A DNA stretch of 63,901 bases, the filler included, from Octopus bimaculoides (lineage: Eukaryota): NCBI RefSeq assembly GCF_001194135.2. It is 5 parts of 5 records of this genome, joined end to end, with 100 filler letters (N's around TTAATTAATTAA, not from the genome) between each part and the next. Parts side by side here need not be neighbours in the genome. Positions count along the whole stretch, not along the records: positions 1 to 20,729 come from NC_068985.1; 4 more parts are not named here. One strand, written 5' to 3'. Shown piece by piece: positions 1,094-20,729 of this stretch (position 1 is the first letter of the stretch; every line of letters starts with the position of its first letter). The translations under genes and the position numbers were made by a program. Below the pieces are notes generated by a model. That model saw only the letters and a program-made list of their open reading frames with translations, ran no database searches and was not told where the DNA came from.

Positions 1094-1235
1094 TCATGAA
1101 TCATTCGTCAAGCCAATACATTGTTGGAAGTGTTGCCTGTGGTTAGGCTGCGGTCCAATTTTAGACAACATGAAGAGATTATCTGTTGAATTAATCCCAA
1201 CACTGACATGAATTGAAGTAGAGGAAGGACAAACT
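1094..1235 (-). CDS. Putative terminal coding exon X, copy A (unknown protein)
   Basis: Acceptor ttttattcag|; phase-2 frame VCPSSTSIHVSVGINSTDNLFMLSKIGPQPNHRQHFQQCIGLTNDS*; paralogous to 12023-12125 and 18753-18855, with several synonymous differences. Confidence 0.55.
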
Positions 1236-1959
1236 CTGAATAAAAATTTAAAAAAACACCACCTGCACTGGATTTGATCCTATGACTTAAGAGTATGCAA
1301 TCCAATATTTTATTCCCACAACCATAGCATTTCTGCAGGTGTATATACTTTGGCAGTTTATAATTAAATAATACCAGATTTAGTAACAAATTAGTTACTT
1401 TTAGCTCTGTTTTAATCGTTTAGCCCTAGGTCAGTCCTCCTCCAGTAGACCTATTATCCCAGAAGAACGTTTCTTATGACTAAACCCAAAAAGGACACTT
1501 TTGCNNNNNNNNNNNNNNNNNNNNNNNNNNNNNNNNNNNNNNNNNNNNNNNNNNNNNNNNNNNNNNNNNNNNNNNNNNNNNNNNNNNNNNNNNNNNNNNN
1601 NNNNNNNNTCCAATTTTAGACAACATGAAGAGATTATCTGTTGAATTAATCCCAACACTGACATGAATTGAAGTAGAGGAAGGACAAACTCTGAATAAAA
1701 ATTTAAAAAAACACCACCTGCACTGGATTTGATCCTATGACTTAAGAGTATGCAATCCAATATTTTATTCCCACAACCATAGCATTTCTGCAGGTGTATA
1801 TACTTTGGCAGTTTATAATTAAATAATACCAGATTTAGTAACAAATTAGTTACTTTTAGCTCTGTTTTAATCGTTTAGCCCTAGGTCAGTCCTCCTCCAG
1901 TAGACCTATTATCCCAGAAGAACGTTTCTTATGACTAAACCCAAAAAGGACACTTTTGC
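1154..1959. other. Identical 351-bp duplication flanking an N gap (probable assembly overlap artefact)
   Basis: 1154-1504 is repeated base for base at 1609-1959, with the gap exactly between the two copies. Confidence 0.8.
1323..1332 (-). CDS. Candidate 10-nt micro-exon, copy A
   Basis: ctgcag|AAATGCTATG|gttgtg. AG, length and GT are conserved at 12210-12219 and 18944-18953, but the donor is weak and the phase is unresolved. Confidence 0.3.
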
Positions 1960-2047
1960 AGGGCCTCCATCACTGGTAGGAAAAAGGGGGGATGAAACCA
2001 TCGATTGTTTGGTATCATCAGACCATTTATCTCAAGTGAATGCTTAC

Positions 2048-2063
2048 TACAGGAGGAATTCCA
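2048..2063 (-). CDS. Putative 16-nt micro-exon, copy A
   Basis: gcattcag|TGGAATTCCTCCTGTA|gtaagc; identical at 12480-12495 while flanking bases differ; phase 2->0 reads GIPPV. Confidence 0.5.
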
Positions 2064-2806
2064 CTGAATGCACCAAAGGTACAGCTGATGGTATTAGAAT
2101 GGTCAAGGGATAAAATCTAACACCAAAGAATAAGTAAAGTCCATGCAAAAGAGCTTGCTGCTACCAAATTTCATACACAACATTTGGCTTAACCACAGGT
2201 TAGGGGTTGAGTATTGAGATTGAACCTGAAATCACACAATTCCTAAGTAAACTTTTTAAAGCATATCAATGCTTGTGCCTGCTTTGTGGGTGTGAAAGTG
2301 GATGGCTGTATTTTAAATAGAAGTGGCCGTGGATGGCTGGCAAAGATATTTAATTTGAAGCTATATGGTTCCTGATTCAATCCCAATGCACATCAACTTG
2401 GGCAAGTGTTTTCTACCACAGTAATTGTTTGACCAATTTCTTGTGAATAAAATTTGGTAGATGGAAACTGTGTAGAAGACCAGCTGTTGCATGTACATTG
2501 AAGCCTCCCTCTGTCTACAGCACAATGTTATCTAAGGAAAAGACAAAGGCCAATACAGTTTCACAGTATGGCTGTGAGAAGGGAAAGGGCAGGATGAGAT
2601 ATCACAAGGCATCCAATCAAGTGTTTTAGCAATCCTGGACTGCTATTATTATTATTACCAAATTCAAAAAGGGAAAGGTACAATTAACTGCATTGATATT
2701 TGAACTCAGAATGTAGACAACCAAGACAAATATCGCTAAGCCTTCTACATGATGCTCTTATCACTCTGCCAATATACTGCACAGTAAATAAATCATATCA
2801 ACTAAC

Positions 2807-2840
2807 CTTAAAGTCGAAAAAGTATTTTGTTGCATATCTC
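2807..2840 (-). CDS. 34-nt exon Y1, copy A (RYATKYFFDFK)
   Basis: tttcttttgcag|G AGA TAT GCA ACA AAA TAC TTT TTC GAC TTT AAG|gttagt; same length and frame as copy B at 13637-13670. Confidence 0.7.
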
Positions 2841-3282
2841 CTGCAAAAGAAACAAATATTTTCATCACATCATCACAATCACCATCATTACTTCTGCATC
2901 AACTCACAAAAAGAACCATTACAGAAATGTCATTTTGTGTTTGTACATTTTATTATTTTAATCTAAATCTAGAATTCATTTCAATAGGTTTACTCTCTGA
3001 ATATCACCAGCTGTCATATTTATGGATGTTATGGATGTCTGTAGAGGATCAAACCTTCATCGATCATTAATCTTGAGAGAATGCTGAAGATTTTTGCAGT
3101 TTTCTCAAAAATGTATTTGAATGAGTTTTTTTATGGAACTAGATAGGTTAATAGTATTATTTTCTCTTCTTATTTTTATTATGCAAACTTTCTTTTCAGA
3201 TGCATATTGTTGTTGTCCCCCATTCCAGGGTCTCATGGGATTACACCTTCCACACCCTCAAAGTCAGCACACCTAATGTTTG

Positions 3283-3855
3283 AAGTGTCACACCCTAACA
3301 GTGGAAGGAATCTGTGAAGAGATAAACTCAGAAAGACCTGGGATGAAGTGGTGAACACAGCCTTCAAATGTTGGGCCACACAGAGGCAATGACAAACAAC
3401 CGAGACCTTTGGAGATATGCTCTGCTTGAAAAGACCCAGCAAGCCAAGTGAGATCATAGCTGTGGCATAAGCCGGTGTCGCATAACCAGCCCATTTAAGT
3501 GTACCCTTCAAGTATTGGGCAATATTCCGCGCTTAAGAAGATATGTTGAGTGAAGTGAAATTGTTGTTGTGGCTGATGCCAGCACCGCCTGATAGGCACC
3601 TGTGCTGGTGGCACATAACAAGCACCATTTCAGCGTGGTTGATGCCAGTGCTGTCGGACTGGTTCCCATACTGGTGGCACATAAAAAGCATCCACTACAC
3701 TCTCAGAGTGGTTGGCATTAGGAAGGGCATCCAGCTGTAGAAATATTACCAGATCAGATTGGAACCTGATGCAGTCTTCTGGCTAGCCAGTTTTCAGTCA
3801 AACCATCAAATCCATGCCAGCATAGAGAGCAGACATTAAATGATGATGATAATAA
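3283..3855 (+). mobile_element. RTE-clade LINE 3' fragment (decayed)
   Basis: C-terminal ORF remnant (TLTVEGI...RKTWDEVV), the shared 3' UTR (gtggttggcattaggaagggcatccagctgt) and an (ATG)n tail. Confidence 0.8.
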
Positions 3856-4084
3856 TGATTCACATTGTGCATGAATGTTTTATATTCAGAATCAATGTTC
3901 TTGATAATTGGTCACAACCACTTTACTCAGATGTCAAGAACCTTTCTTACAATCCTTGCTCTTCCCAATACAGAAGATTTCAGAATTGATGCAATTCTTG
4001 TAGTTACACAAAACTCAATAAAAGACAACTAAGATTATTAATTGTTCTAAGTTGATATCTTTATTGTTCCTTAAATTTGTCCTA

Positions 4085-4936
4085 CCTTGCTTCTCCTTGC
4101 CTGGCTGACTGGGGTAGCCAAGTACCCCCTCTATAATAAGACAACTATCTCTGCCTCTCTGTCATACACTAACCTCTTGACAGGCTCACAGCCATATCCC
4201 TCGATTCCTCCCCTTCTCTCAACCAGGAGCCCTTTGTCTTGCAAGTCACTTGGCAACTCCACAGGTGCTGGTGCCACGTGACAGCACCTGTGCCACTGCC
4301 ATGCAGGAAGTTCCCATGCTACTGCCACATAAAATGCGCTGAGTACACTCTGTAAAGTAGTTGGCATTAAGAAGGGCTTCCAGCAGCAGTGACCATGCCA
4401 AAACAAACAACTGGAGCCCGCTGTGGCCCTCCAGCTTGCCAGTTCCTATCAAACTATCCAATCCATGCCATTAAATGATGATGGTGATACATGATAATGA
4501 TGGTGGTGGTGTAAAAGGTCTTTACTTTTTATAATGGAATCAGGGCAAAATGAAGACAGACCAGGTTGAGATGACAATCATGTTAACTGACAGATCTTGC
4601 AGATCTAAACAGGATTATTATATATAATGGTAAATATCTTTACATGACTTTGTAGCACAGAAGATTTTAAAGATATAATTTCTTATACATTATTCGTTAT
4701 TTGTATCAAATTTAAGATTTGATTTGAATTTCAGCTTTATAAAAATGAGAAACTTTCATGAAAAAGCAATCAAGATTGGCAGATGATTTTATCCAAAGTT
4801 TGATGTCATCATCATCAACATCATTATCATCATTTAAAATCTGTTTACCATGTTAGCATAGGTTGGACTGTTTGACTGGAGGTGGCAAGGTGGAGAGCTG
4901 CAACAGGCTCCAGTCCTCTGTTTTGGCAAGGTTTCT
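4085..4936. mobile_element. RTE-clade 3' UTR fragments (+ copy ~4085-4500, - copy ~4805-4936)
   Basis: Same 3' UTR motif and (ATG/CAT)n tails as the copy at 9130-9780. Confidence 0.65.
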
Positions 4937-5184
4937 NNNNNNNNNNNNNNNNNNNNNNNNNNNNNNNNNNNNNNNNNNNNNNNNNNNNNNNNNNNNNNNN
5001 NNNNNNNNNNNNNNNNNNNNNNNNNNNNNNNNNNNNNNNNNNNNNNNNNNNNNNNNNNNNNNNNNNNNNNNNNNNNNNNNNNNNNNNNNNNNNNNNNNNN
5101 NNNNNNNNNNNNNNNNNNNNNNNNNNNNNNNNNNNNNNNNNNNNNNNNNNNNNNNNNNNNNNNNNNNNNNNNNNNNNNNNNNNN

Positions 5185-5212
5185 GTGTATGGAATAGGCT
5201 TGAGCCTTTTGT
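5185..5212 (-). CDS. Putative terminal exon, copy A (TKGSSLFHT..., truncated by gap)
   Basis: Acceptor ttaactgcaag|; identical to the start of the copy B exon 14448-14510; 61-nt upstream intron. Confidence 0.4.
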
Positions 5213-5273
5213 CTTGCAGTTAAGTACATACAAACAAAAATAGTGTATTAAAAGTTGCATAACCAGGACTTAC

Positions 5274-5286
5274 TGAAGTTGAAATA
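5274..5286 (-). CDS. 13-nt micro-exon, copy A (xISTS)
   Basis: atgttcag|TATTTCAACTTCA|gtaagt (consensus donor); phase 2->0 fits the upstream 56-nt exon. Confidence 0.65.
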
Positions 5287-5446
5287 CTGAACATATAGAT
5301 TCCATGTCTCATATCAACAATGTCATGGCTTCTCTTACTATTTCCTACATTTATATTTCCTTATATCGTTATCATATTTATACAACACAATCTCCTCATA
5401 ATTCAAAGAAAAAAAGACTTAAGCAGAATGTTACATAATCACTTAC

Positions 5447-5502
5447 TTGGCTTGTATGCGGTTAAAACCATCAATTGCTTCTTTTTTAAAGTCTTCAAAT
5501 TG
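5447..5502 (-). CDS. 56-nt exon, copy A (QFEDFKKEAIDGFNRIQA)
   Basis: ccttttctag|CAA TTT GAA...GCC AA|gtaagt; open in phase 0->2; the copy B paralog is 65 nt (+9, in frame). Confidence 0.75.
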
Positions 5503-5604
5503 CTAGAAAAGGTTACAAAAGTATTTGCTGTATGTTTATAATGACTGGATATGAAGAGTTGTATTTTGGACTAGTTTCAACTCTTCAATGAAGCAAAACA
5601 TTAC

Positions 5605-5620
5605 CTGACACATAGAAACA
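5605..5620 (-). CDS. 16-nt micro-exon, copy A (xVSMCQ)
   Basis: gttttttgcttaag|TGTTTCTATGTGTCAG|gtaatg; phase 2->0 fits the downstream 56-nt exon. Confidence 0.6.
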
Positions 5621-6104
5621 CTTAAGCAAAAAACAACTGATCTTTTTCTCAGCCCATGCTAACTTCCAGTAAAGAGCTGAAATCATTGACTGATGGGGGA
5701 TATTACCTAACTTGAGAAGTGATGCAGTAAAGGGACGTAACATAATACTACATGGCACTTCATCTTGCACTGTCAACTGATTTTGATATACCTCTCTTAA
5801 AAAGATTCTATGCAGTCACTAAAAGATAGCAGCAAATATCTCCCTTAAATCTTGCAAAAAACTAAAAGGTGTGGCTGTGTGTTAAGTCTATTATATGTAG
5901 CAAGTTTATATTTGAAAGGAGGAATGGGTACTTCTCTTACCAACCACAAACTCTACCTCTGCCCATCAACTGAAAGGTTATTTGTTGTCTTATCAGACAT
6001 GAAAAGAAGGAAAGCTATGATAACCTCAGCATGATTTTGAATACAGAATTTCGTGAAAGGTGTTATGCTGTTATTCAATCAGCTCAGCTACATCTTCATC
6101 AACT

Positions 6105-6552
6105 ATCATCATCATCAGCTTCATTCAATGTCTGTTTTCCATGGTGGCATGGGTTGGACTGTCTGACAGGAGCTGACTAGTCTCCATGTCTACTTTTGCA
6201 TTGTTTCTATAGCTTGATGCCCTTCCCAATGCCAACTACTTTATAGAGTGTATTGGATGCTTTTATGCAGCACCGGCATGGATGTGTATAGGCGGCACTA
6301 GACTGGGTGTATTTTATGTGGCACCAGCTCCCAATGAGTCTCCAAGATTATGAATGCTCAGCTAGGAAAGGATGCTGTGAGTATGCCAGTATGTAAGGAC
6401 AACTACACCTCTGCATAGCTTGACATATCTTGTCAAGCACAGCAAACCACCAGGAGTCCCAGACCCTGTCCTGTCATCCCCTCTGTAAGACCCAACATCT
6501 GAAGAACTCTCACCACTTCATCCCACATCCTCCTGGGTCTACTCCTTCCACT
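6105..6552 (-). mobile_element. RTE-clade LINE 3' fragment inserted in copy A only
   Basis: Encodes GRSRPRRMWDEVVRVLQMLGLTE plus 3' UTR and (CAT)n; the site is empty in copy B (~15818). Confidence 0.75.
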
Positions 6553-6639
6553 TTAAAGTGTTTTAAATAAGTTTTTCAGTAGGGACAGCTTAGTTTCCAT
6601 TTTCATTTGGTAAAGCTGTTTGTTGTTTGACCTCAACAT
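6553..6639 (-). CDS. Putative exon 'MLR', copy A
   Basis: Strong acceptor tttgttttttccttcag|. Phase 0 gives MLRSNNKQLYQMKMETKLSLLKNLFKTL*; phase 1 gives DVEVKQQTALPNENGN*. Frame unresolved. Confidence 0.45.
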   Translation of the reverse strand: MLRSNNKQLYQMKMETKLSLLKNLFKTL

Positions 6640-7275
6640 CTGAAGGAAAAAACAAATGGATGGAGAGGAAACTGTTGATTTGATCCAAATGCATGAAAGT
6701 GAGAGAATTGATGCTAAAGGCACCCAATAAGCAAATGGTGGTGTTAAACTGGGTGGCATGTAAACCCTGTACCCAGTTTCCTGATAAAGCAAAGGAGTTT
6801 GATGAAAACCAAACAGCTGGTCATCTTATGTCCATATGAATGAAAATAACAACCTGTAGATTGGAAATCATCATCATCACCATCATCATAGTTTTAATAT
6901 TCACATTATATAGCCTTCATGGGTCTGGCAGAATTCATTCACGTAGATGTTTTTTTACAGTGTAAGCATTTAATGTGTTTCCTTGGTGTTTAGACTCACA
7001 GGGAAAGACAATTGGAGCTAAACAACAATAACTGTAATAGTAACAACAATAACCACAAACATCACAGTCAATGCTTCTACTGCTACTGCTGCTGCTGCTA
7101 CTCCAACTATTTTAAAAAAGGAAGACCCCCAACAATTCACCTTAACAGCAAAACAATGCTATCTCTAAAAATGACTGTTAAGGGCTCTGGTTTGAGATAA
7201 AACAGATGAGAGATAAGAAGCCTGTGGTCAGGATGCTTGTCTGTTTCAGCTCACATTAACAGAGGATCTACTAAC

Positions 7276-7288
7276 TTATTTCCAACAA
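7276..7288 (-). CDS. Candidate 13-nt micro-exon, copy A (LLEI)
   Basis: tgtgtag|TTGTTGGAAATAA|gttagt; copy B differs by a synonymous TTG/CTG; only 55 nt from the upstream donor. Confidence 0.35.
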
Positions 7289-7343
7289 CTACACAAACTC
7301 AATATGCTGCCTCATAATAAATAAATAAATAAGAAGAACTCAC

Positions 7344-7377
7344 TGTCGTATATCCACAATGTTTTCTTGCTAGATTT
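7344..7377 (-). CDS. 34-nt exon, copy A (NLARKHCGYTT)
   Basis: atttcttttgcag|...ACG ACA|gtgagt; same 34-nt, phase 2->0 architecture as exon Y1. Confidence 0.65.
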
Positions 7378-7409
7378 CTGCAAAAGAAATAAAGGGACAC
7401 ATATCATCA

Positions 7410-7850
7410 TATAAGCTGGAGACTGATTTTAGATTGGCCAATAAAGTATTCTGGCAGAATATCTTCACACTTCGTAACAAGCCCTCTTCCATCCCTGCCA
7501 GAAAGAACTCACCTGGAATTCCTCTCTGTAAAAAGCAGAGCATTCTTTGGGGTGGAAGAGAATACTTTAAGGATCTATTCAATTTGATCAGGATAAGATC
7601 TTCTGGGTGACATGAGGTGCATCTAGGACTAAAGACTAACCTCACAGAGGCTAAAGTCGCAGAGGTGATTAAAGCACTCAAGTGTGGCAAGGCAGCTGAA
7701 GTGGATGAAATGTTAAGAAAATTAAAAGGAGAAGGTATTCTCTGGTTGATTTGTTTATAGCATGGACTTCTGAAAGGACACCAAAACAATGGCAGTCTGG
7801 GGTGATGATCCCAATTTTGAAAAAGGGAAGGAAAACTGAAGGAAACAAAT
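7410..7850 (+). mobile_element. Decayed RTE-clade LINE internal fragment (region upstream of and at the start of RT)
   Basis: Broken frame ...EYFKDLFN...EVIKALKCGKAAEVDEML... and ...PKQWQSGVMIPILKKG, typical of non-LTR RT domain 0/1. Confidence 0.75.
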
Positions 7851-8039
7851 GTTTGGACTAGGAATTCCTTGATTTGTATATGTGTTATTCCTTGTTTCTG
7901 TTCTGGGTTGATATAAAAACTATAAAAGTTACATGACAAGGACTTCTTGAATTTGAAATACTGAATATAAATATAAATTCTTTCTCAAATCAACATTGTC
8001 ATGGATACTTTTGCTATTTTCTACCATCCACCACCACCA

Positions 8040-8660
8040 TCACTTAGCATCCATTGTCCACAGTGGCATGGGTTGGATGCTTTGACCAGAGATGGTAAGG
8101 TGAGGGACTGTACCAAGCTCTAGTCTGATTTGGTATTATTTCTACGTTTGGATGCCCTTCCTAACACCAACCACTCCAAGAATGTAATGGGTACCTTTAT
8201 GTGCCACCTGCAGGAGTGCCAGTTCTATGGCACTAGTATCTGCCACAACTACAATGTCACTTGGCCTCATGGGTCTTCTTCTCAAGCACAACATATTATC
8301 AAATGTTGCAGTCATAGTTCATTGCCTCCATGAGGCCTGATGCTCAACATTATCATGATGATGATGATGATCATCATCATCATTTAACGTCTGCTTTCCA
8401 TGTTGGAATGAGAGAGACAGTTTGACAGGAGCTGGTCAGGCAGACTTCTGTCTGTGTTAGCAGGGTTTTTACAGCTGGATGCCCTTTCTAACACTATCCA
8501 CCCAGTGGAATGGATTGAGTGATCTTTGCATGGCCAGTTTTGACAAGATTTTTACAGATGGATGCCCTTCCAAATGCCAACCACTTTACAGTATAAACTG
8601 AATGCTTTTTAAGTGGCACCTGCACTGACAGGGTCACCAAGTAACTTGCAAGAAAAAATC
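8040..8660 (-). mobile_element. Stacked RTE-clade 3' UTR fragments
   Basis: Repeated 'ttccatg..catgggttgga...ggatgcccttcctaa..ccaaccac' after (CAT/CAC)n runs. Confidence 0.65.
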
Positions 8661-9129
8661 TTTTGGGAGGGGAGGGAGCATTGCAGGAGGTGATCTAAGA
8701 TGATGAACTGTTATAGTGAGCCAGAGGAGGTACAAGATTACGTGGCCAGAGGGAGGAGGGAAAGATCAGGAATGAGGACAGAAACAGGTGTGTTGCCATG
8801 AAGGAGATACATGGTTACCAAACCTGAGGGAAGAGCAGGAGAATGAGAAAGACGGAGGGAAATAATGAGAGAAACGGTGGTGAAGAGCTGGACAAACTAA
8901 CAAGGGATGGAGATAAGAATGTAAAGGGGAAGGTCAAGGGCTAGAGGGTAGCAATGATACAGTGAGGAAGGAGGAAATGTGAAGAAGCGAAGAGATGTAG
9001 TTTGGTTTGTTGGGTTAGGGCAAGGGTCACCAAACTTCTATCATGGCAAGCCAGGTAACTGAGAGAATGATGAGGGCAGACTGTATAAACATTTTGTTTA
9101 ATACAATACAGTGAATACACAAAAAATAA

Positions 9130-9985
9130 AGACGACCAACATATTTATCAACAGTTGTGGCGTGCAAGAGAGACGATTGCGCTGGTATGGACATGTGGTG
9201 AGAATGGAGGAGGATAGCTGTGTGAAAAAGTGCCACACCCTAACAGTTGAGGGAACCCGTGGAAGAGGTAGGCCCAGGAAGACCTGGGCTGAGGTGGTGA
9301 GGCAAGACCTTCGTACATTGGGCCTCACCGAGGCGATGACTACTGACCGAGACCTTTGGAAATGTGCTGTGCGTGAGAAGACCCGGCAAGCCAAGTAAGA
9401 TCGTTGCCAGTGCCCCTGGACTGGTTCTTGTGCGGGTGGCACATGAGATGCACCATTTTGAGCGTGGCCGTTGCCAGTACCGCCTGACTGGCTCCTGTAG
9501 GATTTTCGAGCGAGATCGTTGCCAGTGNNNNNNNNNNNGCGGGTGGCACATAAAAGACACCATTTCGAGCGTGGCCGTTTTCGTGCGGGTGACACGTAAA
9601 AGCACCCACTACACTCTCTGAGTGGTTGGCGTTAGGAAGGGCATCCAGCTGTAGAAACTCTGCCAAATCAGACTGGAGCCTGGTGTTGCCATCCGGTTTC
9701 ACCAGTCCTCAGTCAAATCGTCCAACCCATGCTAGCATGGAAAGCGGACGTTAAACGATGATGATGATGATGATGATGAAAGCAACATTAGCAATAAGGC
9801 CAGTGGCACGTAAAAAGCACCCACTACACTCTCAGAGTGGTTGGCATTAGGAAGGGCATCCAGCTGTAGAAACTCTGCCAAATCAGATTGGAGCCTGGTG
9901 CAGCCATCTGGTTCGCCAGTCCTCAGTCAAATCGTTCAACCCATGCCAGCATGAAAAGCGGACGTTAAATGGTGATGATGATAAT
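9130..9985 (+). mobile_element. Young RTE-clade LINE 3' end plus a second 3' UTR copy
   Basis: Intact C-terminus VQERRLRWYGHVVRMEEDSCVKKCHTLTVEGTRGRGRPRKTWAEVVRQDLRTLGLTEAMTTDRDLWKCAVREK*, CpG-retaining 3' UTR, (GAT)n tail at ~9755-9780. Confidence 0.9.
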
Positions 9986-10149
9986 GATAATTATATCACA
10001 CCTAGTGCGCATAAATCCCAATTTCACAAACTAAGCAGCAAAAATAGTTCATGAAATTTGTGAAACTGGTGTTTAGCTTTTAAGATATCATCAATTTTTG
10101 CTTTACAGTTGTTGCATCCAACCAAGAGAATTGCTTTCAAATGTTCATC

Positions 10150-10615
10150 AGTCAACCTCATTCAATGTGCTGACTTCACATACTTCATTTTTGGAAATGT
10201 TTGCTCACAGACATAAGTTGTCCCAAACACTGGTGCCATACCAGAGGCAAATGAACTCTCATTGCAGGGGCTTACACAAAAGATACAGTGTAGCAACGTC
10301 TTCTTGAGTCTCCTTCTTCTGCAGGTACCATCCACTTTCAGACATTGGCACTTCTTTATGCAACTGTCCTCTTGCATTCATATGCCTCACATGTCCAGAC
10401 CAATGTGGTCTTCTCTCTTTCATACTACATTTGATTCCTCTTATGTCCAACTTTTCCCTCAATACATTTGCACGTTGTTCTACATGCACACTGATGATGC
10501 ACAACCACAAAAGCATAATGCCTTCATTTCTCTCCAATCTACACATGTCTTTTGCATTCTGAGCCCATGTCTCAATACCATGGAGTATAACCATTCACAG
10601 TCTTATGAATAGAGG
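10150..10615 (-). mobile_element. Decayed RTE-clade LINE C-terminal fragment
   Basis: LHGIETWA..KDMCRLERNEGIMLLWLC...LREKLDIRGIKC..ERRPHWSGHVRHM. Confidence 0.85.
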
Positions 10616-10659
10616 TAGAACTCTGAACTTCCTCCATCTGATCCTTATTCTAGAATAGT

Positions 10660-10860
10660 TCAAAACTTTGGCACAAGGCCAGCAACTTCAGAGAGGGCTA
10701 ATTCAATTAAATTGAACCCACTGCTCAATTTTTACTTATTCTATCAAATGTGTAAGGATGAAAGGCAAAGTCAACCTGAGCTGAAATTTGAACTCACAAT
10801 GTAAAGATGGATGAAATGCCACTAAGCATTATGCCTGCTGTGATAACGATTCTGCCAGCT
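10660..10860 (-). mobile_element. tRNA-derived SINE family S1 (CpG-decayed), shared with copy B at 16785-16960
   Basis: Core 'aaggatgaaaggcaaagtcaacc...tttgaactc'; same insertion at the orthologous position in both units. Confidence 0.75.
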
Positions 10861-10879
10861 CACAAGCTTATATATATAT

Positions 10880-11025
10880 ATCATCATCATCGTTTAGCGT
10901 CCGCTTTCCATGCTAGCATGGGTTGGACGATTTGACTGAGGACTGGTGAAACCGGATGGCAACACCAGGCTCCAGTCTGATTTGGCAGAGTTTCTACAGC
11001 TGGATGCCCTTCCTAACGCCAACCA

Positions 11026-11028
<3 letters not shown>
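10880..11028 (-). mobile_element. Young RTE-clade 3' UTR, truncated by (TA)n and a gap
   Basis: Near-identical reverse complement of 9620-9770. Confidence 0.85.
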
Positions 11029-11063
<35 letters not shown>

Positions 11064-11396
11064 NNNNNNNNNNNNNNNNNNNNNNNNNNNNNNNNNNNNN
11101 NNNNNNNNNNNNNNNNNNNNNNNNNNNNNNNNNNNNNNNNNNNNNNNNNNNNNNNNNNNNNNNNNNNNNNNNNNNNNNNNNNNNNNNNNNNNNNNNNNNN
11201 NNNNNNNNNNNNNNNNNNNNNNNNNNNNNNNNNNNNNNNNNNNNNNNNNNNNNNNNNNNNNNNNNNNNNNNNNNNNNNNNNNNNNNNNNNNNNNNNNNNN
11301 NNNNNNNNNNNNNNNNNNNNNNNNNNNNNNNNNNNNNNNNNNNNNNNNNNNNNNNNNNNNNNNNNNNNNNNNNNNNNNNNNNNNNNNNNNNNNNNN

Positions 11397-11830
11397 GTAG
11401 ATTTGGTCCAAATGCATGAAAGTGAGGGAATTCTCAGTAAAGTCACCCAAGAACCATTCTATTAATTATTTTGGTAGAAAACAAGAGAAATCTCAGTCAT
11501 GACATCTCTAATTAGAAACACATCAGAATGAACAGGTGACTTAGATGAAACTGCACCTTGTTACCTAATGTGATGCCACAGGTAGGCTAATGATATCGTT
11601 TACCTTATTTCTTAAATGAATTCTTAAGTCTTTAGAAAAACCTTCATAGATGACAGAATGTTGAAGGTTTTTGCAGGTTTATTTTTAATCCTTTAACAGA
11701 TTATTCAATCAAATGCAATGGATATTTATCCATATTGTCCTGAATTAATCATGCATTATCTTGTAGATTTAAGGTTTTGATTATGTGATTGTCTACTGAT
11801 GAAACCCAAACTGCTGGTCATGTCTACCTC
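11397..11830 (-). repeat. Segment W (older internal duplicate of the intron upstream of the MLR exon), unit A
   Basis: Matches 18199-18610; shares 'ttcttgggtg..tcactttcatgcatttggaccaaatc' and 'gaccagcagtttgggtttcatc' with 6660-6830 and 15945-16120; contains a partial piggyBac-like MITE at ~11686-11795. Confidence 0.7.
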
Positions 11831-12022
11831 CATATGAGTGCAAATGAGGACTTGTAGATTAGATGTTACTACTATTACTACCACTGCTGCTCCTACTACT
11901 ACTACTACCAGCACCACCACCACCACTACGAGAAAGAGAAGACCACAACAACCACCAGCATTACTACCACCATTACATTTACCACAGGACTACTGCAGTG
12001 TCAACTGACATTGTTGCAAGTG

Positions 12023-12125
12023 TCACCTGTAGTTAGGTTGCTGTCCAATTTTAGACAACATGAAGAGATTATCAGCTAAATTAATCCCAACACTGACATG
12101 AACTGAGGTAGAGGAAGGGCAAACG
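12023..12125 (-). CDS. Putative terminal exon X, copy B
   Basis: ctgtttattcag|c GTT TGC...: VCPSSTSVHVSVGINLADNLFMLSKIGQQPNYR*(TGA). Confidence 0.6.
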
Positions 12126-12479
12126 CTGAATAAACAGAAAAAAAATAACCAACAGCACTGGATTTGATCCTATGACTTAAGAGAATATAAAATATTTTAT
12201 TCCCACAACCATAGAATTTCTGCAGGTGTATATACTTTGGCAGTTTATAATTAAATAATACCAGATTTAGTAACAAATTAGTTACTTTTAGCTCTGTTTT
12301 AATTGTTTAGCCCTAGGTCAGTCCTCCTCCAGTAGACCTATTATCCCAGAAGAACGTTTCTTATGACTAAACCCAAAAAGGACACTTTTGTAGGACCTCC
12401 ATCACTGGTAGGAAAAGGTGAGGATGAAACCATCACTTGTTTGGTATCATCAGACCATTTATCTCAAGTGAATGCTTAC

Positions 12480-12495
12480 TACAGGAGGAATTCCA
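12480..12495 (-). CDS. Putative 16-nt micro-exon, copy B (GIPPV)
   Basis: gcgttcag|TGGAATTCCTCCTGTA|gtaagc. Confidence 0.5.
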
Positions 12496-13636
12496 CTGAA
12501 CGCATCAAAGGTANNNNNNNNNNNNNNNNNNNNNNNNNNNNNNNNNNNNNNNNNNNNNNNNNNNNNNNNNNNNNNNNNNNNNNNNNNNNNNNNNNNNNNN
12601 NNNNNNNNNNNNNNNNNNNNNNNNNNNNNNNNNNNNNNNNNNNNNNNNNNNNNNNNNNNNNNNNNNNNNNNNNNNNNNNNNNNNNNNNNNNNNNNNNNNN
12701 NNNNNNNNNNNNNNNNNNNNNNNNNNNNNNNNNNNNNNNNNNNNNNNNNNNNNNNNNNNNNNNNNNNNNNNNNNNNNNNNNNNNNNNNNNNNNNNNNNNN
12801 NNNNNNNNNNNNNNNNNNNNNNNNNNNNNNNNNNNNNNNNNNNNNNNNNNNNNNNNNNNNNNNNNNNNNNNNNNNNNNNNNNNNNNNNNNNNNNNNNNNN
12901 NNNNNNNNNNNNNNNNNNNNNNNNNNNNNNNNNNNNNNNNNNNNNNNNNNNNNNNNNNNNNNNNNNNNNNNNNNNNNNNNNNNNNNNNNNNNNNNNNNNN
13001 NNNNNNNNNNNNNNNNNNNNNNNNNNNNNNNNNNNNNNNNNNNNNNNNNNNNNNNNNNNNNNNNNNNNNNNNNNNNNNNNNNNNNNNNNNNNNNNNNNNN
13101 NNNNNNNNNNNNNNNNNNNNNNNNNNNNNNNNNNNNNNNNNNNNNNNNNNNNNNNNNNNNNNNNNNNNNNNNNNNNNNNNNNNNNNNNNNNNNNNNNNNN
13201 NNNNNNNNNNNNNNNNNNNNNNNNNNNNNNNNNNNNNNNNNNNNNNNNNNNNNNNNNNNNNNNNNNNTTCTTGTGAATAAAATTTGGTAGGTGGAAACTG
13301 TGTAGAAGACCAGCTGTTGCATGTACATTGAAGCCTCCCTCTGTCTACAGCACAATGTTATCTAAGGAAAAGACAAAGGCCAATACAGTTTCACAGTATG
13401 GCTGTGAGAAGGGAAAGGGCAGGATGAGATATCACAAGGCATCCAATCAAGTGTTTTAACAATCCTAGACTGCTATTATTATTATTACCAAATTCAAAAA
13501 GGGAAAGGTACAATTAACTGCATTGATATTTGAACTCAGAATGTAGACAACCAAGACAAATACTGCAAAGCCTTCCACTCGATGCTCTAATCACTCTGCC
13601 AACATACTGGACTGTAAATAAATCATATCAACTAAC

Positions 13637-13670
13637 CTTAGTTTCTACGAAGTGTTTCGCTGCAACTCTT
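13637..13670 (-). CDS. 34-nt exon Y1, copy B (RVAAKHFVETK)
   Basis: tttcttttgcag|A AGA GTT GCA GCG AAA CAC TTC GTA GAA ACT AAG|gttagt. Confidence 0.7.
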
Positions 13671-14447
13671 CTGCAAAAGAAACAAACATATTTTCATCAC
13701 ATCATCACAATCATCATCATTATTTCTACATCAATGCTCAAACGGAACCATTACAGAACTGTTATTTTGTGTTTGTACATTTTATTATTTTAATCTAAAT
13801 CTACAATACATTTGAACAGGTTCAATCTCTGATTATCACCAGGCATCATATTTGTGGATGTCTGTAGAGTATCAAACTGGAATGTATTTAGTGTACTAAG
13901 ATTTCTCTGTCAGCAAAAGCAGCCATGGTGAGTGAACGTCAGTTTTAGGTATGTTTTAACTGGCTTTTTAACAAGAGCATGACTCTTGCTAATAGGTAAA
14001 GCATCTTGGTTTTCCAAAAGGAACAAATGAATAAATGATATCACAAAGTATTATAAATGCTTCAAATTTTCATTAATTAAGCTTGAAACTCATCTTCGTT
14101 CATTCAAATTAAGCTTCTATAAATTACTCTAGAGAAAGACTTTTGTCATTGAATAACAAGCGATTCTTCCTTATCTCCATTCTATACTGCACACTGGCCA
14201 GTCCTTGGTCAGTTTTGGTAGCATCTCAGGCATTTTCAGAAGAGGTTGCAAGCCCTTTGATTTAACCCTTCCCCAATTATAGAGACAGAGACACTGTGAA
14301 TGTGTCCTAAGATATTTTACACAGTATAATGGCACTAATGCAAAGAAAGTAAGAAAGTTCAATTCATTTCTTTTGTTCTTGACTAAAGTTCATTATTTCA
14401 ATGTGAACTGGAGAAAGAAATGATTCTGAATTGAAAATCCCACCCCC

Positions 14448-14510
14448 TTATTCTGTTTCTCCCCTGTCTCTGTTCTTTGTGGGTGTATGGAATAGGCTTG
14501 AGCCTTTTGT
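14448..14510 (-). CDS. Putative terminal exon, copy B (TKGSSLFHTPTKNRDRGETE*)
   Basis: First AG 61 nt after the 13-nt micro-exon donor; open in phase 0 to TAA; no GT before the stop. Confidence 0.4.
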   Translation of the reverse strand, partial: TKGSSLFHTPTKNRDRGETE

Positions 14511-14571
14511 CTTGCAGTTAAGTACATACAAACAAAAATAGTGTATTAAAAGTTGCATAACCAGGACTTAC

Positions 14572-14584
14572 TGAAGTTGAAATA
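14572..14584 (-). CDS. 13-nt micro-exon, copy B (xISTS)
   Basis: atgttcag|TATTTCAACTTCA|gtaagt. Confidence 0.65.
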
Positions 14585-14748
14585 CTGAACATATAGATTC
14601 CATGTTGTCTCATATCAACAATGTCATGGCTTCTCTTACTATTTCTTACATTTATATTTCCTTACATCGTTATCATATTTATACAACACAATCTCCTCAT
14701 AATTAAATATAAAAGTAAATTTAAGCAGAATGCTATAAAATTACTTAC

Positions 14749-14813
14749 CTGACATCTTCGCCATCAAAATCTTTGGAATAGTAATCAATTTCCTTTTTGA
14801 ACTCTATATATTC
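14749..14813 (-). CDS. 65-nt exon, copy B (EYIEFKKEIDYYSKDFDGEDV)
   Basis: acttttctag|GAA TAT ATA GAG TTC AAA AAG...GTC AG|gtaagt; phase 0->2. Confidence 0.75.
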
Positions 14814-14927
14814 CTAGAAAAGTTTACAATAAAAGCATTTGTTGTAACTTTATAATAAAAGCAATGGTTTGACATTAATAATTCTATTTTGGACTGGTTT
14901 TGACTCTTCAATGAAATAAAACATTAC

Positions 14928-14943
14928 CTGACTCACAGAAACA
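14928..14943 (-). CDS. 16-nt micro-exon, copy B (xVSVSQ)
   Basis: ctttttttctgtttaag|TGTTTCTGTGAGTCAG|gtaatg. Confidence 0.6.
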
Positions 14944-15189
14944 CTTAAACAGAAAAAAAGCTAATCCTTTTCTCTATACATTCTAACTTCCAGGAAAGAG
15001 CTGAAATCATTGACTGATGGGGGATATTGCCTAACTTGAGAAGTGATGCAGTAAAGGGACATAACATAATACTACAAGGCATTTAATCTTGCACTGTCAA
15101 CTGATTTTGATATTCCTTTCTTAAAAAAAGATTTTATGCAGTCACTAAAAGATAGCAGCAAATATCTCCCTGAAACCTTGCAGAAAAAA

Positions 15190-15560
15190 GGCATGGCTAT
15201 GTGGTAAGAAGTCTGTTTACCAACCACATAGTTAAAGGTTCAGTCCCACAACATGTAACCACAGGCAAGTGTTTTCTACTATAACTTTGGGCTGACCAAA
15301 GTCTTGAAAGTGGATTTGGTTACAGAGACCGAAAGAAGCCTGCCACACATGTGTGTGTGTGCATCTTTGTTTATCCAGAACTACTGCTTGACAACCAGTG
15401 CTGGTGTGTTGATGCCCCGATAACCTAGCAGTCCACCAAAAATGATCAACAGAATAAGTACCAATCTTAAAAACAATAGGTACAAGGGTTGATACATTCC
15501 ACTAAAAATTATGAAAAGTGGTACCCCAGCATGGCCACAGTTTAGTGACTGAAACAAGAT
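15190..15560 (+). mobile_element. tRNA-derived SINE family S2 (CpG-decayed), copy B only
   Basis: 'ggctatgtggtaagaa...accaaccacat..ggttcagtccc' head and 'ccccagcatggccacagtttagtgactgaaacaag' tail. Confidence 0.75.
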
Positions 15561-15818
15561 GAAAGGTGAAAGATATATTGTATATTGCTGTATCAAGATA
15601 CACAGTGAGTCCATTAGCTTCTATTCCAAAGGAAGAATGGGTACTTCTCCTACCAGCCACAAACTTTACCTCTGCCTATCAGCAAAAATTGTTGTATGTT
15701 GTGTTATTAGACGTGAAAAGATGGAAAGCTATGTTGACCTCAGCACAATTTTGAATACAGAAATTAAAGAAAAGTGTTATGCTGTCATTTGATTGCTCAG
15801 CTAAATCTTCATCAACTA

Positions 15819-15923
15819 TCATCTGTAAAATGTCTTAAGCGAGTTTGTTAGAAGAGGCAGGTAAGTTTCATTGATATTTTGGTAGCGCTGTCTCAGACTT
15901 GTAAGAATTTCCAACCTCAACAT
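15819..15923 (-). CDS. Putative exon 'MLR', copy B
   Basis: Same acceptor as copy A. Phase 0 gives MLRLEILTSLRQRYQNINETYLPLLTNSLKTFYR* (12-nt in-frame indel versus A); phase 1 gives DVEVGNSYKSETALPKYQ*. Confidence 0.45.
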   Translation of the reverse strand: MLRLEILTSLRQRYQNINETYLPLLTNSLKTFYR

Positions 15924-16583
15924 CTGAAGGAAAAAACAAATGGATGGAGAGGAAACTGTTGATTTGGTCCAAATGCATGAAGGTGAGAGAACTGATGCTA
16001 AAGGCACCCAAGAAGCAGATGGTGGTGTTAAACTGGGTGGCATGTAAACCCTACCCTGTACCCAGTTTCCTGATAAAGCAAAGGAGTTTGATGAAAACTA
16101 AACAGCTGGTCATCTTATGTCCATATGAATGAAAATAACGACCTGTAGATTGGAAATCATCATCATCATAGTTTTAACATCCACATTTTATAGCTTTCGT
16201 GGGTTTGGCAGAATTCATTCATGTAGATGTTTTTTACAGTGTAAGGATTTAATGTGTTTCTTTGGTTTTTAGACTCCCAGGGAAAGACAATTGGAGCTAA
16301 ACAACAATAACTGTAATAGTAACAACAATAACCACAAAAGTCAAAGTCAATGCTGCTGCTGCTACTACTGGTCCCAATGCTGCTACTGTTACCTCCACGC
16401 TGTTTACATGCATTTTAAAAAAGGAATACTCTCAACAATTCACCTTCAGAAGCAAAGAAAAATCGTAAATCTCAAGATGACTGTTAAGGGCTCTGGCTGG
16501 ATGAGATAAAAGGATGAGGGATACCAAGCCTGTGGTTAGGATGCTTGTCTGTTTCAACTCACATTAACAGAGCATCTACTAAC

Positions 16584-16596
16584 TTATTTCCAACAG
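16584..16596 (-). CDS. Candidate 13-nt micro-exon, copy B (LLEI)
   Basis: tgtgtag|CTGTTGGAAATAA|gttagt. Confidence 0.35.
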
Positions 16597-16651
16597 CTAC
16601 ACAAACTCAATATGCTGTCTCATACAAAATAAATAAATAATAAGAACTAAC

Positions 16652-16685
16652 CTGTGTATATCCACAATGTTTTCTTGCTAGATTT
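16652..16685 (-). CDS. 34-nt exon, copy B (NLARKHCGYTQ)
   Basis: ctttcttttgcag|...ACA CAG|gttagt; stays 34 nt despite compensating changes versus copy A at its 3' end. Confidence 0.65.
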
Positions 16686-18198
16686 CTGCAAAAGAAAGAA
16701 AGGGACACAGATCATCATCATGATCTTCATCATTTTTATGTCTTGAGGCAAAGATAAACATCATAAGAATGTAACTTTAGTATAATTTCAGGAGAGGGCT
16801 AAGTCAATTACATTGCCCCCACTGCTCAGTTTTTACTTATTCTATCAAATGTGAAAGGATGAAAGGCAAAGTCAACCTGGGCTGAAATTTGAACTCACAA
16901 TGTAAAGATGAACGAAATGCCACTAAGCATTATGCCTGTTGGGCTAACAACTCTGCTAGGTCACTACTTTATAAATATACATATATATATAAATTACCGT
17001 GAATTTTTTTAGAGACACTTTCAAAATTATCAGAATATTGGACTGAAGATTTGGAATAGAGAAATTTTCATTCTCTTAACCATGAAACGATCGTATCCAA
17101 TTAACTAAAGACTTGTTTTGTTTATGCTTTTCCCTCCGGTTTTTTGTTCTATGTGTGCCATAAATATCGCCATCCGTTTAGAGAAAAATTTGTAGTTTAG
17201 AATCAGTAGTTCTTTGACTGCTATTTCTAAATTTTCAGTATGTTGGAGAAGCAACTCAATGCTAATCCCTGTATATTTATGATTATATATATATATATNN
17301 NNNNNNNNNNNNNNNNNNNNNNNNNNNNNNNNNNNNNNNNNNNNNNNNNNNNNNNNNNNNNNNNNNNNNNNNNNNNNNNNNNNNNNNNNNNNNNNNNNNN
17401 NNNNNNNNNNNNNNNNNNNNNNNNNNNNNNNNNNNNNNNNNNNNNNNNNNNNNNNNNNNNNNNNNNNNNNNNNNNNNNNNNNNNNNNNNNNNNNNNNNNN
17501 NNNNNNNNNNNNNNNNNNNNNNNNNNNNNNNNNNNNNNNNNNNNNNNNNNNNNNNNNNNNNNNNNNNNNNNNNNNNNNNNNNNNNNNNNNNNNNNNNNNN
17601 NNNNNNNNNNNNNNNNNNNNNNNNNNNNNNNNNNNNNNNNNNNNNNNNNNNNNNNNNNNNNNNNNNNNNNNNNNNNNNNNNNNNNNNNNNNNNNNNNNNN
17701 NNNNNNNNNNNNNNNNNNNNNNNNNNNNNNNNNNNNNNNNNNNNNNNNNNNNNNNNNNNNNNNNNNNNNNNNNNNNNNNNNNNNNNNNNNNNNNNNNNNN
17801 NNNNNNNNNNNNNNNNNNNNNNNNNNNNNNNNNNNNNNNNNNNNNNNNNNNNNNNNNNNNNNNNNNNNNNNNNNNNNNNNNNNNNNNNNNNNNNNNNNNN
17901 NNNNNNNNNNNNNNNNNNNNNNNNNNNNNNNNNNNNNNNNNNNNNNNNNNNNNNNNNNNNNNNNNNNNNNNNNNNNNNNNNNNNNNNNNNNNNNNNNNNN
18001 NNNNNNNNNNNNNNNNNNNNNNNNNNNNNNNNNNNNNNNNNNNNNNNNNNNNNNNNNNNNNNNNNNNNNNNNNNNNNNNNNNNNNNNNNNNNNNNNNNNN
18101 NNNNNNNNNNNNNNNNNNNNNNNNNNNNNNNNNNNNNNNNNNNNNNNNNNNNNNNNNNNNNNNNNNNNNNNNNNNNNNNNNNNNNNNNNNNNNNNNNG

Positions 18199-18610
18199 CA
18201 TGAAAGTGAGGGAATTCTCAGTAAAGTCACCCAAGAACCAATCTTTTAAATTATTCTGGTAGAAAACAAGAGAAATTTCATTCATGGCATCTCTAGTTAG
18301 AAACACATCAGAATGAACAGGTGACTTAGATGAAACTGCACCTTGTTACCTAATGTGATGCCACAGATAGGCTAATGATATTGTTTACCTTATTTCTTAA
18401 ATGAATTATAAGTCTTTAGAAAAACCTTCAGAGATGACAGAATGTTGAAGGTTTTTGCAGGTTTATTTTTAACCCTTTAACAGATTATTCAGTCAAATGC
18501 AATGCATATTTATCCATATTGTCCTGAATTAATCATGCATTATCTTGTAGATTTGGGGTTTTGATTATGTGATTGTATATAGATGAAACCCAAACTGCTG
18601 GCCATGTTTA
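18199..18610 (-). repeat. Segment W, unit B
   Basis: Paralog of 11397-11830; strong acceptor-like tttctcttgttttctaccag at ~18257, which is mutated to CAA in unit A. Confidence 0.7.
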
Positions 18611-18752
18611 TCTCCACTACTGCCAAGGCCACCACCACCACAAGAAAGATGACAACGACCCCACAACCACCATTACTACTGCTAGAGATACTGTCACCAC
18701 CACTATAGTTACCACATGTCTACTGCAGTGTCAACTTACACTGTTGCAACTT

Positions 18753-18855
18753 TTATCTGTAGTTAGGTTGCTGCCCAATTTCAGACAGCATTAAGAGATT
18801 ATCTGCTAAATTAATCCCAACACTGACATGAATTGAGGTAGAGGAAGGGTAAATG
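18753..18855 (-). CDS. Putative terminal exon X, copy C
   Basis: gtctatttattcag|c ATT TAC...: IYPSSTSIHVSVGINLADNLLMLSEIGQQPNYR*(TAA); stop at the same codon as copy B. Confidence 0.55.
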
Positions 18856-18974
18856 CTGAATAAATAGACAAAAAAATAACCATCTGCATTAGATTTGATC
18901 CTTTGACCTAAGAGTGTGTAATGCAATAGATTATTTCCAGAACCATCTCATTTCTACAGGAGTATCTACTTTGG

Positions 18975-20132: not shown

Positions 20133-20249
20133 TTTTTTGGTTTTGTCATAAGAAACACTCTCTTGGGATAATAGGTCTGCTGGATCAGGACTGGCCTAGG
20201 GCTAAACAATTACAAGAGAACTGAATTGTTAGTAAATCTGGTATTCCTC

Positions 20250-20526
20250 CTCATCTTCATCATCATTTAACATCCGCTTTCCATGCTGGCATGGGTTGTA
20301 CAGTTTGACTGAAGACTGGTAAGCCAGTATGCTGCATCAGGCTCCAATTTGATCTGGAAAGGTTTCTAAAACTGGTTGCCTTTCCTAATGCCAACCACTC
20401 CGAGAGTGTAGTAGAGTGCTTTTTACGTGCCACCAGCATTAACCACACTCCATTGGTGCCTTTTACATGTCACTGGCATGGATGCCAGTCAGGCAGTACT
20501 GGAATTAGCCATGACAATGATTTCAC
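20250..20526 (-). mobile_element. 3' UTR and tail of the same RTE copy, now inverted
   Basis: Read on the - strand it starts gtgaaatc, where the + body stops, and ends in (GAT)n. Confidence 0.75.
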
Positions 20527-20729
20527 ATACTTGCTAAGTAAACTTTTTAATGCATATCAATGCTTGTGCCTGCTTTGTGGGTGTGAAAGTGGATGGCTGT
20601 ATTTTAAATAGAAGTGGCCGTGGATGGCTGGCAAAGATATTTAATTTGAAGCTATATGGTTCCTGATTCAATCCCAATGCACATCAACTTGGGCAAGTGT
20701 TTTCTACCACAGTAATTGTTTGACCAATT

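Follow-up and report, generated by a model that had tools for sequence, protein, structure and literature searches.

Coding exons that diverge faster than the introns between them are reportedly found in the crotaline venom PLA2 genes (Nakashima et al. 1993/1995) and in the abalone lysin gene (Metz et al. 1998). In conotoxin genes, the exon encoding the mature peptide has Dn values of 0.35-0.53 and Ds values of 0.34-0.68 (non-synonymous and synonymous divergence, respectively), in contrast to 0.02-0.13 or less for exon 1; trinucleotide indels are frequent and the introns are conserved, which has been read as exon-specific acceleration (PMC3862624). Islands of divergence between paralogues that undergo interlocus gene conversion are also an established pattern, as described for the Teshima-Innan model and for the primate red/green opsins, ruminant CEACAM1, and Tigriopus GOT1 (PMC3924837, PMC3728101, PMC7042247). 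Here we analysed a tandem array of putative very short exons in Octopus bimaculoides. The window, i.e. the whole stretch of DNA under study, comprises 63,901 nucleotides (nt) in five joined parts of the RefSeq assembly GCF_001194135.2, and the array lies in its first part, positions 1-20,729, which is taken from NC_068985.1.

Self-BLAST comparisons revealed at least three direct, collinear tandem units, A, B, and C, within the window, and the unit length in the array appears to be about 6 to 11 kb. The core of unit A that is homologous to B spans 1118-7410, unit B spans 11397-17298 (~6.2 kb with the gap at 12514-13267 counted in), and unit C, at 18198-20729, is partial and contains only the part downstream of the exon Y1 described below, its variable exons lying past the end of the piece. 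All three are oriented on the minus strand. The interpretation that we favour, with a probability of about 0.5, is a minus-strand transcription unit of very short exons, organized in at least three units, in which the non-coding backbone evolves in concert and the short coding segments are hypervariable. Judged from the genomic sequence, the hypervariable short exons of this tandem family are very probably real. The array adds a new case, so far unannotated, to a known evolutionary pattern.

Exon candidates were defined as segments that follow a polypyrimidine tract with AG and precede GT(A/T/G)AGT. The search for this strict combination of acceptor and donor yielded essentially just four exon types, denoted e1, M, X, and Y1, with every instance on the minus strand and no such segment on the plus strand. 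The putative exon e1 (34 nt, phase 2 to 0, predicted peptide NLARKHCGYTT) is located at 7344-7377 in unit A and at 16652-16685 in unit B, where it also has 34 nt and differs from A at 4 of 34 positions, all at the 3′ end. Exon M, also called the “MLR” exon, spans 6553-6639 in A, where the predicted peptide MLRSNNKQLYQMKMETKLSLLKNLFKTL ends at a TAA stop that arises at a transposon insertion junction, and 15819-15923 in B, where the peptide MLRLEILTSLRQRYQNINETYLPLLTNSLKTFYR ends at a TGA stop. Because it reaches a stop codon in both copies, M would be a terminal coding exon or a short open reading frame (ORF), not an internal exon. Exon X has 56 nt in A (5447-5502, QFEDFKKEAIDGFNRIQA+AA) and 65 nt in B (14749-14813, EYIEFKKEIDYYSKDFDGEDV+AG), with phase 0 to 2 in both copies. 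Exon Y1 has 34 nt in both copies and is found at 2807-2840 in A (phase 2 to 0, (K)RYATKYFFDFK; sequence GAGATATGCAACAAAATACTTTTTCGACTTTAAG) and at 13637-13670 in B ((R)RVAAKHFVETK; sequence AAGAGTTGCAGCGAAACACTTCGTAGAAACTAAG). The peptides predicted for X, Y1, and M contain no cysteine, and that of e1 contains one. The exons e1 and Y1 are paralogues, including their intron flanks, and thus each unit holds an older internal duplication of a Y-type exon followed by an M-type exon.

The divergence of the exons between A and B was compared, by Fisher tests, with that of all aligned intron and with that of intron more than 300 nt away from any gap. For the aligned intron, 156 of 1942 positions (8.0%) are substituted, the value being 4.6% for intron up to 300 nt from a gap and 10.8% for the remainder. 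The fractions for three of the exons are 3 to 5 times higher, i.e. 35% for Y1 (12/34; p=1e-5 against all intron and 2e-4 against intron distant from gaps), 45% for X (p=8e-13 and 4e-10, respectively), and 31% for M (p=2e-9 and 7e-7, respectively). In contrast, e1 shows no acceleration (4/34, 12%, not significant against all intron). Taken together, e1, the splice signals, and ~2 kb of intron differ by just 8-11%, versus 31-45% for M, X, and Y1. The initial annotation of this locus had proposed that exons evolve faster than introns, and the proposal holds, at a level well beyond chance, for Y1, X, and M, also when gap-proximal intron is left out, but not for e1. Its individual counts were reproduced as well: 12 of 34 nt and 6 of 11 residues differ in Y1 (RYATKYFFDFK versus RVAAKHFVETK, read in phase 2), only 3 differences are found in the 46 intronic nt next to the Y1 donor, X shows a net in-frame gain of 9 nt (56 versus 65 nt), and the MLR exon has a 12-nt indel that is also in frame.

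According to the identity profile and the mismatch map, divergence at Y1 and M starts within a few bases of the acceptor and ends just before the donor. For X, it extends ~60 nt into the upstream intron and ~50 nt downstream; the upstream spill is partly due to a 26-nt tandem duplication that B carries there. None of the eight exon copies is in contact with an assembly gap, and in both copies the distance to the nearest gap exceeds 1 kb for exon M, for the 700-nt intron upstream of it, and for e1. The intron between e1 and M and the interval between M and X are free of gaps in A as well as in B, while the intron between X and Y1 is free of gaps in B and spans the gap at 4937-5184 in A.

The phases of the putative exons form a chain, in which X leads from phase 0 to 2, Y-type exons from 2 to 0, and M from 0 to the stop; the codon at the X/Y1 junction would encode Lys in A and Arg in B. 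The earlier statement that splice sites and frame are kept is therefore borne out by canonical, conserved AG/GT signals on one strand, by the chain of phases, and by indels that are multiples of three (9 nt in X and 12 nt in M). The predicted M peptides of A and B have 14 invariant residues in the pattern MLR, Q, YQ, ET, L, LL, N, KT. Ancestrally, both copies of M ended at the same TGA, and copy A now stops two codons earlier via an insertion of fragments of long and short interspersed nuclear elements (LINE and SINE) at 6111-6552. It is unlikely that open, phase-compatible frames and two in-frame indels occur together by chance, with a rough estimate of about 0.005.

Substitution rates were estimated by the pairwise Nei-Gojobori method (NG86) for the exons Y1 and M and for the first eight codons of X, which are unambiguous, i.e. 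for 141 aligned coding sites (27 synonymous and 114 non-synonymous) of only two copies. The values for A versus B are pN 0.29 (dN 0.36) and pS 0.46 (dS 0.70), with silent and replacement sites diverged to a roughly similar extent, which results in a dN/dS of about 0.5. The initial annotation had expected dN/dS above 1 for Y1 and the 56/65-nt exon and had regarded values at or below 1 as speaking against it; with two copies the result provisionally speaks against it, and strict positive selection (dN/dS above 1) is not demonstrated. Moreover, the exon pS of 0.46 (about 12 of 27 sites) exceeds the intron value of 0.108 (Fisher p=1e-5), so that synonymous divergence in the exons is ~4 to 6 times the intron divergence. 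In the codon alignments, 6 of the 23 codons that specify the same amino acid differ synonymously, versus about one expected at the intron rate. The exons thus also look older, or more mutated, than the introns at silent sites. Because their silent divergence is higher than that of the introns, recent duplication combined with selection on amino acids cannot, on its own, explain the contrast.

The intron identity is heterogeneous. The longest identical run between A and B has 167 columns and was reached in 0 of 5000 permutations; this Sawyer-type run test is hence positive, and the longest identical tracts adjoin gaps. The tract at 2438-2732 is ~99.5% identical to B 13268-13560, the B side of which ends at the gap 12514-13267, and the tract at 5185-5307 is 100% identical to B 14483-14605 and ends on the A side at the gap 4937-5184. 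Comparison of all three copies, which covers only the short segments common to A, B, and C, shows a mosaic of similarities: A and C are 98.1% and then 83.4% identical in adjacent segments, A and B 90.5%, and B and C 86.2% to 94.7%. For example, C 18198-18616 matches B 11414-11832 at 94.7%, and C 20523-20729 matches A 2232-2438 at 98.1%. Such patchy, mosaic identity, as far as can be judged from the sequence, points to gene conversion or to assembly effects, and its heterogeneity makes the introns a poor neutral clock. The initial annotation had named collapsed assembly, or conversion tracts that merely stop near exons, as explanations that would undermine its proposal. Tracts of this kind are present (the 167-column run, the mosaic copies, and the identity near gaps), but the contrast between exons and introns remains.

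In the model that we favour, each unit would consist of two old sub-repeats, each with a 34-nt Y-type exon followed by an M-type exon with a stop, namely X-Y1-M′, with M′ hidden in a gap, and e1-M. The peptides, whose C-terminal part the exons would encode, would be small, charged, and probably helical. Fairly recent duplication and ongoing short-tract gene conversion or unequal crossing-over would homogenise the non-coding backbone. The coding islands could persist because converted exon variants are selected against, i.e. diversity is favoured, because the exons are too diverged for conversion tracts, or for both reasons. Exon-focused acceleration of the conotoxin kind, with raised dN and dS and trinucleotide indels, would fit the numbers equally well and may be combined with conversion; with two copies and no orthologues the two processes are inseparable, and both may act. 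A bolder version, which we consider possible but rather doubtful, is a lineage-specific array of small, cysteine-free, helical peptides whose exons are actively kept hyperdiverse within a concerted backbone. Equally tentatively, diversity-favouring selection, possibly together with an exon-focused mutational process, could then make this array a cephalopod counterpart of conotoxin-type diversification, which all current annotations would have missed because its exons have only 34-105 nt.

If the array is transcribed and translated, it would represent an unannotated, rapidly diversifying family of cephalopod peptides, and genes made of micro-exons can escape standard annotation. Under the same condition, the locus would offer a compact natural system in which concerted evolution of introns can be told apart from exon-targeted acceleration, a distinction still argued for conotoxins. 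If the pattern is partly an assembly effect, it would be a warning about rate contrasts beside gaps in draft genomes.

The resemblance to the Conus conotoxin genes has several aspects. In both cases, a multi-copy gene family of a mollusc has conserved introns and a conserved upstream exon followed by hyperdivergent downstream coding exons, dN and dS are both raised (0.36 and 0.70 in the octopus), and indels in multiples of three (9 and 12 nt in the octopus) are concentrated in the variable exons. In contrast to conotoxins, the octopus array showed no signal-peptide exon, propeptide, or cysteine framework, the exons are much shorter (34-105 nt), the introns have 0.7-2.6 kb versus over 3 kb, and there is no sequence similarity, the predicted octopus peptides being rich in K/E/D/F/Y and poor in cysteine. 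The numbers resemble those of conotoxin genes, and membership in that class would be conjectural. With the paralogues that form islands under conversion, the octopus copies share the direct tandem orientation, mosaic identity with identical tracts beyond chance, a closest pair of copies that changes along the unit, islands that coincide with coding segments, and a silent divergence in the exon islands that is higher than that of the homogenised intron flanks. Those cases differ in that they involve well-characterised proteins with exons of normal size and comparisons with orthologues, whereas the octopus array has two or three copies and its concerted evolution is deduced from mosaicism within the window only. 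Coding exons that are more diverged than introns are also shared with the crotaline PLA2 and abalone lysin genes, but there dN reportedly exceeds both dS and intron divergence, whereas in the octopus dN is lower than dS and dS is higher than the intron value.

Database searches gave a uniformly negative result. The concatenated exon peptides of copies A and B had no candidates among 5.8 billion proteins, with three shared 5-residue words as the criterion, and a profile of exon M had 0 matches among 1.84 billion representatives. Pfam, NCBIfam, and PDB contained nothing meaningful for the exon peptides, and no octopus family of this architecture was found in the literature. As a control, a reverse-transcriptase fragment of the window retrieved proteins of O. 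bimaculoides and O. vulgaris, so that the silence of the protein searches is informative. If it is a gene, it is unannotated and lineage-restricted, and apparently restricted to octopus.

Several points weigh against the model of concerted introns and hypervariable coding exons. The mismatches are distributed 13:13:19 over the codon positions, i.e. codon periodicity is not significant, and the case for coding is therefore built only on the splice signals, the compatible frames, and the in-frame indels. When both strands were scanned for an ATG plus a hydrophobic run plus a donor, no start codon or signal-peptide exon emerged, and no convincing candidate is conserved between the two copies; such an exon could lie in a gap or beyond the window, and the gene model is thus incomplete. 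Each variable exon is represented by just two copies in the window. Copy A is full of transposon insertions, one of them at the stop codon of M, and may be decaying. The exons are known here from genomic sequence alone, and no annotated or predicted protein shares them, although the proteomes of O. bimaculoides and O. vulgaris are contained in the database. Lastly, the intron identity may be partly technical, as the most identical tracts adjoin gaps in a scaffold with a proven artefact at gap flanks.

That artefact concerns positions 1154-1504 and 1609-1959, an exact 351-bp duplicate (100%) on either side of the gap 1505-1608. Unit B has this stretch once, and the duplication in A is thus a scaffolding or gap-closing artefact, so that the gap and one 351-bp copy are almost certainly spurious. 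The flanks of the gap 12514-13267 are collinear with A 2081/2438, which makes order and orientation consistent. The contig break at 13268 in B and the end of the piece at 20729 in C both align to A 2438, the edge of a SINE-like element (A 2232-2438), which suggests that the assembler broke repeatedly at this repeat boundary. The two gaps between units, 11064-11396 and 17299-18197, are at homologous positions, each with (AT)n on one side (11029-11063 and 17284-17298, respectively) and a paralogue of the flank preceding M on the other side, and both ends of unit B are accordingly homologous junctions of acceptor flank, gap, and (AT)n. The paralogue at 11397-11456 (minus strand), which adjoins the gap 11064-11396, is 82% identical to the intron stretches 15958-16017 and 6674-6733 upstream of M, and the corresponding flank of unit C, at 18198-18230 (minus strand), adjoins the gap 17299-18197. 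Given this position, the gaps 11064-11396 and 17299-18197 probably each conceal a second M-type exon, M′, i.e. there would be one further M-type exon per unit inside the gap between units.

Four other explanations were weighed. The initial annotation had assigned the exons to effector, venom, immune, or reproductive proteins, and a recent tandem duplication of such a secreted effector gene followed by positive selection, with the introns as a neutral clock, would account for a divergence that is 3 to 5 times higher in the exons and has sharp edges at the splice sites, for in-frame indels, and for a conserved e1 upstream of hypervariable exons, reminiscent of the first versus the mature exon of conotoxins (PMC3862624). 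We consider this unlikely, given a dN/dS of about 0.5 at 141 aligned coding sites, silent changes in 6 of 23 same-residue codons (~1 expected), for which amino-acid selection is insufficient, and introns too heterogeneous to serve as a clock; furthermore, the searches for a signal peptide, a cysteine framework, a Pfam domain, and a homologue all found none, and the proposed class thus found no backing. The units could alternatively be cassettes of a larger gene with constant exons outside of the window, either alternative 3′ ends, as in lola or mod(mdg4), or mutually exclusive groups of exons. The recurrence of stop-bearing M-type exons (M′, M, M′, M), each after short phase-compatible exons, the location of all splice signals on one strand, and the failure to find a first exon or start codon within the units would be in line with cassettes. 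However, the entry phase is 0 for X but 2 for e1, which precludes joining both to one upstream donor, unit B has no inverted repeats of the docking/selector type, and no annotated octopus protein contains any of these exons; an arrangement of this kind is quite improbable. A Dscam-type cluster of mutually exclusive exons, in which alternative exons of equal length and phase are lined up between constant ones, differs additionally in that the octopus unit mixes exon types, some ending in stops, and that the only inverted repeats of unit B are (AT)n.

An origin of the contrast in the short-read draft assembly, by collapsed or gap-filled introns or by divergent haplotypes misplaced in tandem, has the exact 351-bp duplication across the gap 1505-1608 in its favour, as well as near-100% tracts that stop exactly at gaps, the lower intron divergence near gaps (4.6% versus 10.8%), and contig breaks at homologous positions in B and C. 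Yet the contrast persists after removal of all gap-proximal sequence, in both copies no gap comes within 1 kb of M, of the 700-nt intron upstream of it, or of e1, and large copy-specific insertions, a non-homologous segment of 0.6 to 1.9 kb, and a third unit are unlike a collapse or a haplotig. Artefacts account for part of the highest identities, but not for the contrast at M, and as a general explanation they are very unlikely. We rate lowest the possibility that the exons are non-coding, i.e. that a spliced long non-coding RNA or a host gene has functional, conserved introns and drifting exons. Host-gene arrays for small nucleolar RNAs (snoRNAs) and microRNAs (miRNAs), such as UHG and the SNORD116 cluster, carry their functional products in introns, and the octopus array resembles them in its tandem units and in short, poorly conserved exons with better conserved introns. 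The substitutions without codon periodicity or a signature of purifying selection, and the lack of a detected homologue or complete ORF, would also fit. In contrast to these arrays, the octopus introns yielded no snoRNA, miRNA, or structured element: Rfam gave no match at a permissive threshold, a C/D-box scan had no candidates, no tRNAs were found, and the most conserved tracts fold no better than shuffled sequences (z +0.1 to -1.3). The intron conservation is broad, ~90% over kilobases including transposon fragments and microsatellites, without discrete foci; unconstrained exons cannot outpace unconstrained intron; and the octopus exons keep compatible open frames and in-frame indels, a combination unlikely by chance.

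Several further coding segments were considered and rejected. The plus-strand ORFs at 2700-2966 and 13530-13793, which overlap Y1, lose their mutual frame after a 2-nt indel, and a plus-strand ORF across X is truncated in B. A 24/27-nt segment between AG and GT, located in the e1-M interval, is interrupted by a stop in A and its acceptors are weak, and the “MLRPFT...” segment at ~5745 lacks an acceptor, is in the wrong phase, and has a donor that is mutated in B. A role of e1 as first exon, starting from an upstream ATG, would merely translate the polypyrimidine tract. In B, a 45-nt candidate that precedes e1 is in the wrong phase, and X as a first exon downstream of a TATA-like motif has a sole ATG frame that is closed in B.

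The frame of M is also open for ~40 codons 5′ of the acceptor (6640-6759 and 15924-16043, minus strand), starting from a conserved ATG. The ORF spanning M (MPPSLTPP...CIW.KSTVSSPSICFFLQ, then MLR...) has 74-79 amino acids (aa); its N-terminal part is hydrophobic and its C-terminal part hypervariable. In the part upstream of M, all five differences between A and B (5/5) are non-synonymous, the hydrophobic stretch is atypical, and the paralogous flank of M′ does not have the ATG. We read this stretch as intron, the alternative being a single-exon model with a signal-like leader. An exact look-up found no record of the 74-aa ORF across M in copy B.

The piece 1-20729 is AT-rich and packed with SINE and LINE fragments and microsatellites. 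The segments of A that match unit B at 83-93% in self-BLAST are 1118-2081, 2438-3054, 5185-5886, 5903-6110, and 6630-7410; between them, the unit is broken up by A-specific transposon insertions and by the gaps 1505-1608 and 4937-5184. A 3.3-kb block of nested LINE/SINE fragments (7411-10683), specific for A, is located directly upstream of e1. The A-specific insertion 6111-6552 (LINE 3′ tail plus SINE) sits exactly at the end of the M ORF, which has lost its last two codons and had its 3′ flank displaced; B is uninterrupted at this site, and the homology of A resumes at 6110. B carries a specific SINE-like insertion between M and X (15209-15615). As A and B each have several private transposon insertions, the units are not newborn. 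In the middle of the X-Y1 intron, the 607 bp of B at 13877-14483 are unique and have no counterpart in A 3054-4936, where 1.9 kb consist mostly of transposons plus the gap; this points either to a replacement of the segment or to an A homologue concealed in the gap 4937-5184.

Additional elements surround the units. A palindromic element at 381-958 lies in A-specific sequence below 1117; positions 441-930 match their own reverse complement at ~69%, and the palindrome is flanked by 28-bp inverted repeats (381-408 and 931-958) that are 96% alike. By its sequence organization, it looks like a miniature inverted-repeat transposable element or a foldback DNA transposon. On the plus strand, 18914-19423 contains a fragment of a LINE reverse transcriptase (Pfam RVT_1, E=2e-8) and, after it, a weak cysteine-rich motif of the PHD/C1-like type; the nearest proteins are entries of O. 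bimaculoides and O. vulgaris, some of which are named PHD-type zinc finger proteins. LINE 3′ tails of a related kind are present at 3283-3554, 6428-6541, 9111-9404, 10259-10599, and 19612-20129. Positions 9589-9988 contain two head-to-tail copies of an abundant SINE family with a period of 215 nt and 91% identity, and members of the same family were found at ~3635-3859, 4310-4470, 4800-4936, 6105-6328, 8029-8625, 10879-11029, and 20245-20473.

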